NCBI GenBank assembly: GCA_010909165.1
Contig: MU008204.1
Span: forward strand, 141,810-205,809
Length of the DNA stretch: 64,000 nucleotides
Direction: 5' to 3'
Source: Anthoceros angustus
Taxonomy: Eukaryota > Plantae > Anthocerotophyta
In this document: positions 25,281-30,834 of the stretch, piece by piece
Numbering within the stretch: the first letter of the stretch is position 1
Layout of the letters: each line of letters begins with the position of its first letter
Translations under genes and position numbers: made by a program
The notes under the pieces: generated by a model
What the model was told of the DNA's origin: nothing
The model's input: the letters and a program-made list of their open reading frames with translations, nothing else
Database searches by the model: none

Positions 25281-25437
25281 GTTGATGTCTATCCACCAAC
25301 TCTGACCTGGCTATTTCATGCCTTGATTGTTTTGCTCTTCTGACCTGGCTGTTTCATGCCTTGATTGTTTTGCTCTTCGATCCTGCATCTCGTGTGTAAG
25401 TTCGCGCATCTGAGAATAGGTGTAGATATTGGACATG
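25281..25437 (-). pseudogene. PPR E2/PG-box fragment (relic)
   Basis: The minus strand gives MSNIYTYSQMRELTHEMQDRRAK and GMK*PGQSWWIDIN, versus MSNIYTGAEMWEQAEDMQVRRK..KQPGQSWWTDTN in the intact PPR. It has an internal 38-bp duplication, a stop and frameshifts. Confidence 0.75.
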
Positions 25438-25833
25438 CCCAACTTAGAAATTGCAATTTATTGGTCACAACGAGCACAGCTCACAAAACAGTCGCAATCA
25501 GCTGGAAGGTAAGCCATAAGTTGCCCAGCCAGAAAAACCACAAGCAAGCTCTAGGAGGAAAGAAGCAGGTAATTATTCCGTAACATCTTAGACCTCGAGT
25601 CAAAACCCATACAATAAGGCGGACTATTATACACCATGTGAAAAACGGAAATAGTTCAGACAAAAATGATTCCAAAATTTTGGCATTAGACAGAGTACAC
25701 CGCTCTTTGCGAATCCTCGTTCAACACAAATTGACACATGTAGGATGCGCGCCCGCACGACGGGACCTCCCGGAGCTCCTCACAAAATTGCTGTCCAGAC
25801 GCCGTGTGCGCTCCAAACTCCCCGACAACTCGC

Positions 25834-26277
25834 CTAACGGTAGGACTTCTGGAAACGGGCTCGAGCACCACGACCTCCAAACTTCTTAGGTTCGCAGCGT
25901 CGGGGATCAGCCACCAGCAAAGTCCTGTCGTACCGGACGAGGATGTCCTTGATCTCCTGCTTGGACTGCTCGTCCACATACTTTTGGAAGTAGGCCACCA
26001 GGGCCTTCGCGATGCTCTGCCGGATGGCGTAGATCTGCGAGGTGTGCCCTCCGCCTCTCACCCGTATCCTCATATCAACCTCAGCAAAACGCTGGCGGCC
26101 CAGCAATAGGATAGGCTCACAGGCCTTGTACCGCAAAATTTCGGGCTCCACCAGCTCGATCGGGCACCCATTGATCTTAATCAACCCGCGCCCCCGCTTG
26201 CAGTAGGTGACGGCCACAGCTGTTTTCTTCCGCCCGAAGCACTGCACTGACTCCACTGTCGCAGGTGGTGCCGCCAT
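25834..26277 (-). CDS. RPS16: 40S ribosomal protein S16 (uS9), single exon
   Basis: [37 protein letters not shown]...[20 protein letters not shown]...[25 protein letters not shown]; ATG at 26277. Confidence 0.98.
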
Positions 26278-26478
26278 GGCTACGTTGGAGCCCGATAGTG
26301 CACCAAGGGCCTGAGCATCTGCACGCAAATGACTCTCTCGTCTAGGGCAGACAAACCCAAAACCCTTTCTGGTTCGGGGAAGCTAGTGTATGTACGTACA
26401 TATATAGACCGTAATATATATTCCGCGGCGGACTCTAATATATATATTCCGCGGAGATGACCACGATGGCTGTTCTGC

Positions 26479-26672
26479 CTACAACCACATTGTAGGTTTC
26501 CATGCTCTGATTATGTTAGACATCAACACATGTGTTCTGGCGTCATTTTCGTCTAACGTCACAAAAGGGTTCATTCTTACTTGTCGAGTCCATTCATGTC
26601 TGTTCACCAGCTTGGTCGAATGAATAGCGTGCCACCTCCACATTGCTCCATTTTTTGTAAGCACTCAACGGA
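26479..26672 (-). pseudogene. Scrambled copy of the PPR E-domain 3' end
   Basis: Short segments are near-identical to 27320-27590 (tgtt(a)gacatcaacacat, cgtc..tttcgtctaac, ttggtcgaatgaatagcgtgccacctccacattgctcca, ggttcattcttactt) but rearranged. Translation includes LDENDARTHVLMSNI. Confidence 0.85.
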
Positions 26673-27401
26673 TTAGAGCTGGTGAACAGACATGAATGGA
26701 TTTGACAAGTAAGAATGAACCCTTTCTTTCACAAAATGAAGAACCGAAAAAGATATCAGAGGCATCTCGAAGCATTCCCCAGGGCGCCGTGCGGGTCACA
26801 ACGAGAAGCCAGTTGTATCACATGCTCTAAACGACATTGAGTTACTCTACGACTTTGATCTTCTACGACAAACCTACGATATCCGCGCTCTGCGGTGAGC
26901 ATTTCAAAGGCAGGCATGCAGATTTGAGCAACACGCTCTACGGTGAGCATTTCCAAAGCAGGCATATAGATCTGTTTGCTCAATATCTGGGTGTACGGAC
27001 AAGCATGTTCCCAAAGAGTTGTGGTAAGGACTGTATCTTCCGCTGGCAGGATATATATATTCTACTATGTAAGAACATACCACACCTCTTTGGGAACATG
27101 TTAGTACGCCCAGATCTTGAGCAGACAGATCTGCTTGCCTACGTTCGAAATGCTCACCGCAGAGCGTGGATATCGTAGGTTTGTCGCAGAATGGAGTAAC
27201 TCAATATCATTTAGAGCATGTGATACAGCCGGCTTCCAGCTTCTTGCTGTGACCTGCACAGCGCCCTGGGCCTGCTTCGAGATGCCTCTGATTTCTTTTT
27301 CGGTTCTTCATGTTGTGAAAGAAAGGGTTCATTCTTACTTTGTCGAGTCGCCAGCTAAAAAGCTATGCACGAGTCCGTTCGTGTCTGTCCACCAGCTCTG
27401 A
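26673..27401. repeat. Long inverted repeat (arms about 26673-27026 and 27078-27401, loop about 50 nt)
   Basis: The plus strand from 26673 (agagctggtgaacagac...gtaagaatgaaccctttctttcacaa...cagaggcatctcgaagca...acaaacctacgatatcc.cgctctgcggtgagcatttc...catgttcccaaagag.tgtggta) matches the reverse complement of 27078-27401 segment by segment. Confidence 0.92.
27060..27334 (-). pseudogene. Degenerate DYW cytidine-deaminase domain downstream of the PPR stop
   Basis: After the stop come ALC(+1 nt)GHSKKL (canonical LCGHSEKLA; the inverted copy reads GHNEK), then TNLR 70 nt after the His codon (canonical spacing about 72 nt), then AVSISNVGKQICL (cf. ATKLISKIVGREIIV) and a RGV.CS-like end. No intact CxxC or DYW tripeptide. 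Confidence 0.7.
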
Positions 27402-30049
27402 CCTGGCTGTTTCCATGCTCTGATTCCTTTTCTCCTTACCTGCATGTCCTCTGCCTGTTCCCACATCTCAGCACCAGTGTAGATGTTAGACATCAACACA
27501 TATGCTGCGGCGTCGTTTTCGTCTAACTTCACTGCTTGGTCGAATGAATAGCGTGCCACCTCCACATTGCTCCACTTCTGGCAAGCACTCAACATGGTGT
27601 GCCAGACAATTTCATTAGGCAGAACTGGCATTGTGGTCACCAAAGTCAGTGCCTCATCCAATCTGCCTGCACGGCCCAGGAGGTCCACCATGCAAGTGTA
27701 ATGCTCGATGGTCGGAGTGATGCCATAGTCTCTGCTCATGTTGTCGAAAAGCTCTCTCCCCTTGTTCACTAGGCCAGCATGACTGCAAACTGATAGTACA
27801 CTTAGCATTGTAATGCCGACTGGCTCTATGCCTTCGTCTTTCATTTTCTGCAGTAAGTTGAAGACCACTTCACTGTCTCCTTGACAGGTGTAGCCAGCAA
27901 TCAGTGCAGTCCAGACAACATCGTCTCGTTCGGGCAATGCATCAAACACCTGCTGTGCGTCAATCATGCTCCCAGATTTACCATACATGTTTATCAAACT
28001 GCCTGCTACAAACATATCTGCTAGAAGCCCTTGCTCTTCAATCTGTGCATGGAGCTGTCTTCCCAGATTCAGAGCTGCCACATTTGCACATGCCTGCAGG
28101 AGGCATGCAAATGTCACAGAATCGGGTACAGTGATGCCTTCTTCGTGCATAGCACTGTAAAGACGAAGGGCCTCCTGGCCCATGCCCTCCTGGGAATATC
28201 CTGCAATCAAGGCAGTCCACGTGACCACATCTTTGTGCCCAAGTTCTTCAAACACTCTTTCCGCGTCCTCCAGGCTGCCACACTTTGCATACATGTTTAC
28301 CAAACTGTTTGTGACCAACACTTCTGCTTGGAGTCCTCGTTCTCTGATTTGTGTATGAAGCTGGTTGCCTCTCTGCAGTGCTGGGGTTCCCACACTCGCA
28401 CATGCCTGCAGGAGGCACACAAATGTCACAGAATCGGGTACAGCTATCCCCTCTTCTTGCATAGCAGTGTGAAGACGAAGCGCTTCTTGCCCCATGCCCC
28501 TCTGGGAATATCCTGCTATTATGGCAGTCCACGTCACTGCATCTTTTTTACCAAGGCCGTCAAACACTTGTTGCGCATCTTCCAAACTGCCACACTTTGC
28601 ATACATGGTAACCAAACTATTGGCTACAAAAACATGAGTATGATGTCCTTGTTCTCTAATCTGTCTGTGAAGCTGCTTCCCTGTCTCCAAGGCCAGGACA
28701 CCCAAACTTGCACATGACTGCAAGAGACACACAAATGTCACAGAATCAGGTACAGCCTCGCCTTCTTCCTGCATAACACTGTAGAGATGAAGGGCTTCCT
28801 GTCCCATGCCCTGCTGAGAATATCCTGCAATCAGAGCCGTCCACATGACCACATCCTTCCGACGAAGTCCATCAAACACTCTCCGAGCATCTTTCAAGCT
28901 GCCACACTTTGCATACATGTTCACCAAACTGGTGGCCACGAAGACATCAGCTTGGTGCCCTCGTTCTCTAATCTGCGCATGAAGCCTCTTCCCCATCTCC
29001 AACGCCTGGGCACCCAAACTTGCACATGCCTGCAGGAGGCACATAAATGTCACCGCAGTTGGCGCAACAACGCCTTCATCTTCCATAGCCGTGTACAGAC
29101 GAAGGGCTTCCTGCCCCATGCCATGCTGGGAATACCCTCCTATCATGGCATTCCACGTGACCACATCCTTTCCAACAGTTCCATCAAAGACACCTCGGGC
29201 ATCTCCCAAGCTGCCACATTTGGAATACATGTCAACCAAGCAACTACAAACGAACAACCCAGGCTGAAGGCCACTAGCCAACACATCATCATGCACCTGC
29301 TTCCCAGTTCTCAAGTCCGATCCCCTTGCACACGCCTGAAGGGCTGCCACAAACACATGACCATCAGGCTTCACACCAGACCTGCGCATCCGATCATACA
29401 GCTGTATGGCCTGCTTGTCTTGCCCCTGTTTCACATGCGCAGAAATTATGGAAGACCACATGAAGGCATCTGGCTCAGCTACCGTGGTGAACACGTCCAT
29501 CGCGTCTTGCAACCTGCCGTGGGAAGCATACATTCGCAGGATGTGATTGCCCAGGAACGTATCCGACTCGAACCCCCTTTTCGTCGCGAAAGCATGGACT
29601 CGGCGGCCCAGAACAAGATCCTTGCCCCCCATACATTTCTTCAGGACAGCAAAAAAGAGAGACTTTGGAATGGCATAGTCTTGCTGCACCAGCACTCCCA
29701 ACGCCTCAACAGCCTCAGTCAGACGGCCCTTTTCGCATAGCTTGCTCACGGTTTCGTGTCCTGCAGGTCTGCCAGGGTAAGGATCCTCCGGTAAGCTCTT
29801 CTTCAATTTCGAGGCACGACGACCCATCTCCATATCCAGAGTAGCACTCTGCGCAGCTGGCTTCCGTCCATTTCTGTTGCGCCTCGTGACTTTGTTGTTT
29901 GCGGCCGGCTGGTCCCTTGAGGTCAGGTGAGAGGGAGCTTTGCACAGAATTCGATTTAACATACCAATTTGTTGGGTCGAAAACAGCGGTGCGCACAATG
30001 GGTCATGTTGGCCATTGTGACAGTCAATAGCAACGCTCCAGACTGCCAT
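27335..30049 (-). CDS. PLS-class PPR protein, E class with PG-box, DYW truncated (organellar RNA-editing specificity factor), single exon
   Basis: Repeated P-L-S triplets (VVTWTALIAGYSQEGMGQEAL / SVTFVCLLQAC / VFVANSLVNMYAKCGSLEDA), then P2-L2-S2 (CSHAGLV..G; EHYTCMVDLLGRAGRLDEA), E1-E2, and QPGQSWWTDTNGLVHSFLAGDSTK*. First ATG at 30049, about 904 aa, with an N-terminal transit-peptide-like region. Confidence 0.95.
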   Translation of the reverse strand: MAVWSVAIDCHNGQHDPLCAPLFSTQQIGMLNRILCKAPSHLTSRDQPAANNKVTRRNRNGRKPAAQSATLDMEMGRRASKLKKSLPEDPYPGRPAGHETVSKLCEKGRLTEAVEALGVLVQQDYAIPKSLFFAVLKKCMGGKDLVLGRRVHAFATKRGFESDTFLGNHILRMYASHGRLQDAMDVFTTVAEPDAFMWSSIISAHVKQGQDKQAIQLYDRMRRSGVKPDGHVFVAALQACARGSDLRTGKQVHDDVLASGLQPGLFVCSCLVDMYSKCGSLGDARGVFDGTVGKDVVTWNAMIGGYSQHGMGQEALRLYTAMEDEGVVAPTAVTFMCLLQACASLGAQALEMGKRLHAQIRERGHQADVFVATSLVNMYAKCGSLKDARRVFDGLRRKDVVMWTALIAGYSQQGMGQEALHLYSVMQEEGEAVPDSVTFVCLLQSCASLGVLALETGKQLHRQIREQGHHTHVFVANSLVTMYAKCGSLEDAQQVFDGLGKKDAVTWTAIIAGYSQRGMGQEALRLHTAMQEEGIAVPDSVTFVCLLQACASVGTPALQRGNQLHTQIRERGLQAEVLVTNSLVNMYAKCGSLEDAERVFEELGHKDVVTWTALIAGYSQEGMGQEALRLYSAMHEEGITVPDSVTFACLLQACANVAALNLGRQLHAQIEEQGLLADMFVAGSLINMYGKSGSMIDAQQVFDALPERDDVVWTALIAGYTCQGDSEVVFNLLQKMKDEGIEPVGITMLSVLSVCSHAGLVNKGRELFDNMSRDYGITPTIEHYTCMVDLLGRAGRLDEALTLVTTMPVLPNEIVWHTMLSACQKWSNVEVARYSFDQAVKLDENDAAAYVLMSNIYTGAEMWEQAEDMQVRRKGIRAWKQPGQSWWTDTNGLVHSFLAGDSTK

Positions 30050-30079
30050 GGCTCGCAGAGATACCAGAGGCAGCCAGCC

Positions 30080-30118
30080 GGCGTTGATGACCAATACCAA
30101 GTATTGGTCATCAACGCC
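30080..30118. other. Perfect 18-bp stem, 3-nt loop hairpin upstream of the PPR start
   Basis: ggcgttgatgaccaatac-caa-gtattggtcatcaacgcc; the arms are exact reverse complements. Confidence 0.95.
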
Positions 30119-30834
30119 ATTTCCGCAGAGCAAAGCAACCCCGCATTCTCAACCCCTGTTCACCCCAGACCTCCTATCTTCCAAGACATAGTTGCATTAT
30201 GGTTGTAGATTTTTCCTCAATCCTCTGATCATGAGCAAAATGGAATAAAATGGATGAGTGGGAAGGTCATGGTGGGCTTTCCAACGAGTCCATGCTTGCC
30301 CTGGTATGAGCTTTTGATCTCCATATAGGTTGAAAGGAACGTCTTCGAAGATTTTCTCGAGATGACAAAAATTGCTTAATTTGCTTTGTGCACAACACCT
30401 TTCCTGGGCTGGACACTTGTTGATCGGCACTAAGGACACCCACTGATCATGTGGAAACCAAGGGATTATGCTAAACCATTCATTTACAAGGCCGAAAGGA
30501 ACGTGTACACTCTTCACACTCCGGAGTGCCATGGCACCAAGGTTCTATCCCCACTAACCTCCCTCTAACCTGACATCTATGCTACCGCGTCCTCAAATGT
30601 ATACGCATAAGTGCATGAGAGCCATACGTAGTCCGCTTATCCAACGCGTGGCACTTTCCCACTGGCTACACCACGGCACCGTGAACCGCGTACCAGCCAT
30701 GGCACATCGTCGTGGTGGCCGCGAGGAGCCCGCGCAATGTTGGTAACCCAGGCGGCCATGGCTGGGTTAGCATGGCCGCAACGCTTCTGTGAACGATGCC
30801 ATGAGATTCTTTATACTTACAATTGCCCAATTTT

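Follow-up and report, generated by a model that had tools for sequence, protein, structure and literature searches.

Here, we describe a hairpin of approximately 730 nt in the genome of the hornwort Anthoceros angustus, in which the 3' end of an intact PPR gene and its 3' flank face a diverged copy of themselves in the opposite orientation, close to the gene for cytosolic ribosomal protein S16 (RPS16). Judged from this one sequence, taken without an outgroup, the hairpin is probably a structural scar, neutral in effect, left by turnover of the PPR family, and not a dedicated regulatory gene. The principal features, numbered within the window (the 64-kb stretch of DNA that was analyzed), are as follows.

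25281-25466, minus strand: third, older PPR remnant (E2/PG-box), downstream of RPS16
25834-26280, minus strand: uninterrupted ORF of cytosolic ribosomal protein S16 (uS9), Pfam Ribosomal_S9, E = 1.5e-38
26675-27026: left arm, 352 nt, derived and inverted, copied from the PPR 3' end and 3' flank
26886-26974: tandem duplication of 48 nt in the left arm, two copies 85% alike; present as a single copy in the right arm
27027-27077: loop, 51 nt, with an AT-rich centre
27078-27399: right arm, 322 nt, the source copy, of which 27335-27399 is PPR coding sequence and stop
27350-27375: 26 nt found only in the right arm, bounded by the direct repeats CGAGTC at 27344-27349 and 27370-27375, and encoding part of LVHSFLAG
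27335-30133, minus strand: intact ORF of the PLS-class PPR gene, 932 codons, with in-frame ATGs at 30049, 29962, and 29833

The two arms were delineated by joining collinear pairs of inverted repeats identified in a repeat search. The layout agrees with a sequence-only reading of the locus, which had proposed an inverted duplication of the PPR 3' end, with two long arms around a short loop, the last codons and stop of the intact gene in the right arm, and RPS16 about 400 bp away. Both arms indeed contain coding sequence together with flank; the TAA stop (27335-27337) and the last 21 codons (27338-27400) occupy the right arm's outer 65 nt, and 395 nt separate the RPS16 ATG from the left end of the hairpin. 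The remainder of the right arm (27078-27334) is the 3' flank of the PPR gene, in which protein homology is undetectable. In a global alignment, the left arm and the reverse complement of the right arm share 275 matches against 34 mismatches (89% identity over aligned columns), the latter comprising 22 transitions and 12 transversions, and are further distinguished by the 48-nt tandem duplication, the 26-nt segment, and gaps of 11, 7, and 4-5 nt. The longest perfect arm-to-arm runs are 28, 20, 20, and 19 bp. The energy predicted by RNAfold for the 729 nt at 26673-27401 is about -478 kcal/mol on both strands, as befits the long hairpin anticipated in that reading, and lies far beyond that of shuffled sequences: the minus-strand RNA folds at -477.7 kcal/mol (z = -50) and the plus-strand RNA at -478.6 kcal/mol (z = -32), with approximately 320 paired positions in the stem, and no shuffle reached the native energy on either strand. 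A transcript crossing both arms is thus predicted, by the folding model, to collapse on itself as long dsRNA.

The sequence-only reading had also placed a fossil DYW domain in the arms, a claim that we could not substantiate with any of three approaches, given that Pfam, tblastn, and a custom DYW profile all failed to produce a match beyond the PG box. Pfam searches of the stop-free ORF pieces of the arms returned nothing at E <= 1. The tblastn queries were 120 PPR homologues collected by a word search, with a complete DYW domain at the end of 20 of them, and none of the 120 matched between 26729 and 27334 at E <= 0.01. The profile was built from those 20 domains and searched, with filters off, against all six frames of 26400-27460, in which stops were written as X; only its positions 7-40 matched, and these correspond to the PG box of the intact ORF. 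The DYW core (PF14432, with its HxE ... CxxC zinc site) is accordingly not detectable in any frame of the arms. The strings LCGEH and LLHS, which lie in two different arm frames and were considered as pieces of a DYW core, found no support from tblastn or the profile and were dismissed as chance resemblances.

Within the PPR ORF itself, Pfam identifies PF01535/PF13041 repeats and the E motif PF20431 at residues 854-914, and no PF14432. The encoded protein ends in ...KQPGQSWWTDTNGLVHSFLAGDSTK, that is, with the C-terminus KQPGQSWW...GDSTK. The repeat period of the gene, 312 nt, fits P-L-S triplets. Four such 312-nt units, at 28078-29313, retain 68-80% DNA identity to one another, suggesting that whole triplets were duplicated in tandem within this PPR gene of the editing-factor type. 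The PLS repeats, the E motif, the stop just after the PG box, and the lack of a deaminase core are those of the E+/E-type, and by these sequence features the gene is a member of an E+/E-type subfamily without DYW. Its closest relatives among the 120 homologues, all from Logan assemblies, are P0061, P0085, and P0109 (65%, 53%, and 49% identity, respectively); these stop 36-112 residues past the PG box and lack the DYW domain of Pfam (PF14432). Because the closest relatives end in the same way, loss of the deaminase core is an old trait of the subfamily and not a sign of recent decay. E+/E-type PLS PPR proteins possess a truncated DYW domain, and in angiosperms, the deaminase is supplied in trans. 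The hornwort gene resembles these proteins in its P-L-S triplets, its Pfam E motif, and its PG box followed by an early stop, but differs from the typical case in the PG box itself, which has the variant form QPGQSWWTD. This form, unusual compared with the usual PGxSWIEV, is shared with P0061 and P0109.

The direction of copying can be read from the 26-nt segment that is deleted from the left arm and also from the piece at 26564-26612. The LVHSFLAG stretch to which it contributes is conserved in homologues, as FMHAFVVG in P0061 and AVHTFGVG in P0109; given that the left arm lacks nucleotides encoding conserved residues, the gene served as the source from which the left arm was copied. The hairpin would then have originated in a moderately old inverted segmental duplication, in which the final 21 codons were copied together with the stop and roughly 260 nt of 3' flank, and were placed tail-to-tail, directly downstream of the PPR gene.

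The left arm is part of a wider patchwork, spanning 26458-27026, in which every piece comes from a single 560-nt source at 27078-27639 and direct and inverted copies are mixed. The pieces located to the left of the hairpin, each 17-60 nt long, derive from 27322-27639 of the same PPR gene and are listed below.

26458-26481, plus strand: inverted copy of 24 nt, 87.5% identical to PPR coding sequence 27616-27639
26496-26562, minus strand: direct copies of two PPR coding pieces, with the intervening 57 nt missing
26496-26512, minus strand: the first of these, 100% identical to 27409-27425
26513-26562, minus strand: the second, 88% identical to 27483-27532
26564-26612: second copy of the arm's PG-box end, 96% complementary to 26677-26725, at a distance of 64 nt
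26610-26669, minus strand: direct copy, 93% identical to PPR coding sequence 27534-27593

The piece at 26564-26612 is inserted between two collinear PPR fragments (26513-26562 and 26610-26669), and in the centroid structure of an extended fold, it pairs with the left arm's outer end, in competition with the right arm. Pooled identity does not differ significantly between the arms (275/309) and the patches (190/207; Fisher p = 0.37), a result that accords with a single period of rearrangement. Nevertheless, some pieces of the patchwork could represent an older direct duplicate, separate from one event, and a single sequence does not allow the event or events to be reconstructed with certainty.

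The patchwork may be the product of break repair that involved template switching or the synthesis of filler DNA. Gorbunova and Levy, in 1997, and Loytynoja and Goldman, in 2017, are said to have described filler DNA at repaired breaks and template-switch mutations. The locus resembles such products in that the pieces are short, come from within about 1 kb, occur in both orientations, and create new hairpins (26564-26612), and in that a deletion occurred between 6-nt direct repeats. It departs from typical filler DNA in the length of its main piece (352 nt) and in junctions with little clear microhomology.

The remnant at 25281-25466, the third PPR relic in this neighbourhood, indicates that the region has a history of PPR 3'-end duplication. 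Within this decayed PG-box remnant, positions 25301-25376 comprise a 38-nt tandem duplication with 97% identity. At 1-537, the window contains just one further PPR locus, which has nothing in common with the arms. In A. angustus at large, the E-type is the largest PPR subclass, with 516 of 1,156 members, compared with 337 of the DYW type, and the enlargement of the gene inventory is attributed chiefly to tandem duplication and HGT (PMC7027989).

RPS16 is flanked on both sides by PPR 3'-end remnants (25281-25466 and 26458-26669) and may represent a retrocopy or a gene that was inserted into an old cluster of PPR sequences. Upstream of RPS16, an AAACCC-rich stretch resembling a telo-box is found at about 26355-26368, and TAATATATAT(A)TTCCGCGG occurs twice (about 26413-26455). 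A scan for bacterial-type promoters and terminators was disregarded as irrelevant for a plant locus, and an exact look-up of the window's own proteins in the protein collection yielded no match.

Several other origins were weighed against a local inverted duplication. Hornwort PPR genes are very numerous and often duplicate (PMC7027989), and one might therefore imagine that the whole gene was duplicated tail-to-tail and that the inverted copy later decayed to its 3' end. Such a decayed copy would extend in inverted orientation beyond the left arm, but the fragments there are direct, the tblastn matches in 26470-26728 are all on the minus strand, and the sole inverted piece is 24 nt long, which makes this course of events quite unlikely. 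Insertion of a foldback or MITE-type transposon where the PPR gene ends would account for the long terminal inverted repeats and the short loop. However, the right arm terminates, on its outer side, in conserved coding sequence (QPGQSWWTD...GD, common to P0061 and P0109), no target-site duplication is present at 26665-26674 / 27400-27409, no further copy of the arms occurs in the 64-kb window, and an exact search of metagenome contigs for the 28-nt core of the arms found none; the transposon was rejected as very improbable. A scan of metagenome DNA with a degenerate PG-box pattern likewise gave no match. Palindromic joins are a known artefact of long reads, and the hairpin might, in principle, reflect a fold-back assembly or a chimeric read. 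The arms of a fold-back artefact would be near-identical, whereas those observed here differ by 11% substitutions (34 mismatches), the 48-nt tandem duplication, and indels of 26, 11, and 7 nt; this divergence, already held in the sequence-only reading to make an artefact unlikely, effectively rules out a fold-back, and we regard an artefactual origin as improbable in the extreme.

Other explanations concern what the hairpin does. From its position, with the stem starting at the PPR stop and ending about 400 nt before the RPS16 ATG between two tandem minus-strand genes, one could argue for a 3'-end or termination element, possibly Dicer-dependent, that limits PPR read-through into the RPS16 promoter. 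Position is the whole of that argument, and such a role is highly unlikely; the PPR stop is followed by weak variants of the polyadenylation signal but by no canonical AATAAA, an observation that carries little information. A working hairpin-siRNA or proto-miRNA gene, regulating the PPR gene and its close paralogues and/or directing methylation next to the RPS16 promoter, has more in its favour: the fold is long and stable on either strand, the arms are of protein-coding origin, as the inverted-duplication model of young MIR genes expects, the right arm is the PPR gene's own 3' end, and a 21-mer from the PG box also matches the remnant at 25285 with 3 mismatches. Against it stand the lack of a DYW domain and the small coding share of the arms (about 50-65 nt), wobble-compatible substitutions without strand bias, and the lack of a hairpin-specific methylation footprint. 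Ribosomal protein genes are usually highly expressed, and strong spread of methylation onto the promoter of one would be costly. Moreover, the published PPR-siRNAs are secondary siRNAs, derived mostly from one clade (PMC13612597). On balance, we consider a regulatory gene of this kind unlikely, and the scar of family turnover the probable reading.

The RNA that the locus could yield can nonetheless be described. The long intramolecular stem and the homology of the arms to a protein-coding gene are hallmarks of hairpin-siRNA and proto-miRNA loci, and a hairpin of 89% identity with perfect runs of 19-28 bp would be a fully competent Dicer substrate. A transcript over both arms might be provided on the minus strand by PPR read-through, or on the plus strand if the RPS16 promoter also fires divergently; it would form an imperfect dsRNA of about 320 bp and, by analogy with plant hairpin-siRNA loci, would be diced. 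The resulting small RNAs would match chiefly the last 65 coding nt of the PPR gene itself and its 3' flank, given that the coding portion of each arm is confined to the outer 50-65 nt or so and the other 260 nt or so are flank. The earlier proposal that such RNAs act against PG-box and DYW regions across numerous editing-factor paralogs is therefore not borne out: with no DYW sequence and so little coding sequence per arm, broad targeting of paralogues is unlikely, and the main target would be the PPR gene itself. Across the 64-kb window, the only off-locus site matched by a 21-mer with no more than 3 mismatches is the one at 25285, in the dead PPR remnant.

Wobble (G:U)-compatible transitions between the arms number 12 on one strand and 10 on the other, a near-equality that offers no hint that an RNA helix has been selected on one strand. 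Transitions between the arms are about sixfold more common at CpG sites (9/37 vs 10/256, p = 1e-4), a contrast that is inflated by counting CpG in either arm. The observed/expected ratio of CpG is 0.72-0.86 in the arms and 0.53-0.64 in the flanks, and CpG depletion in the PPR coding sequence at least equals that of the arms; because depletion is no stronger in the arms than in the flanks, there is no footprint of hairpin-specific methylation (RdDM). That the locus is an active hairpin-siRNA source tuning its own E-type PLS PPR mRNA, along with near-identical paralogues, seems decidedly improbable.

Young MIR genes reportedly arise by inverted duplication, as put forward by Allen and coworkers in 2004, and the Arabidopsis MIR161/MIR163 model and IR71-type inverted repeats are examples of young MIR and hairpin-siRNA loci. 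The hornwort locus shares with them a long intramolecular hairpin with arms homologous to a protein-coding gene and, with MIR161 in particular, an arm fragment that comes from a PPR gene. It differs from these loci in lying within the 3' end of its parent gene, in being known from sequence alone, and in that most of each arm is non-coding flank. Small-RNA sequencing exists for A. angustus, in which novel miRNA precursors average 70 nt, compared with about 730 nt here (PMC7027989). The MIR5638 model of Rfam, a long hairpin of 464 positions, matches the inner hairpin (26935-27170, minus strand) with an E-value of 2e-14. Membership in this family was rejected given the score of 61.2 bits, against a gathering score of 500, and the case illustrates how misleadingly small E-values become when long inverted repeats are compared with such models. 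None of the other curated families in Rfam produced a relevant match.

The published PPR-siRNAs are RDR6-dependent secondary siRNAs (phasiRNAs) that are triggered by miRNAs or TAS2 and are prevalent in eudicots; 122 of 168 siRNA-producing PPR genes belong to a single clade, and the producers include several RFL genes (PMC13612597). The hornwort locus is comparable in that a PPR gene would be both a possible source and a possible target of small RNAs, but here, the gene is a PLS-class E-type member in a hornwort, and an inverted repeat would supply the dsRNA.

For the PPR gene itself, these findings amount to a correction: it is an ordinary E-type gene of an old DYW-less subfamily, with no recent loss of the DYW domain. 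If small RNAs do arise from the locus, it would be a natural gene with its own 3' end as a hairpin and would allow silencing control of PLS-class editing factors to be tested outside flowering plants; active regulation, if true, would represent the first case of small RNAs controlling PLS-class organelle-editing factors and would capture the birth of a MIR gene in a bryophyte. If the hairpin is only a scar, it adds a further example of the local duplications, some of them inverted, by which the very large hornwort PPR family turns over.
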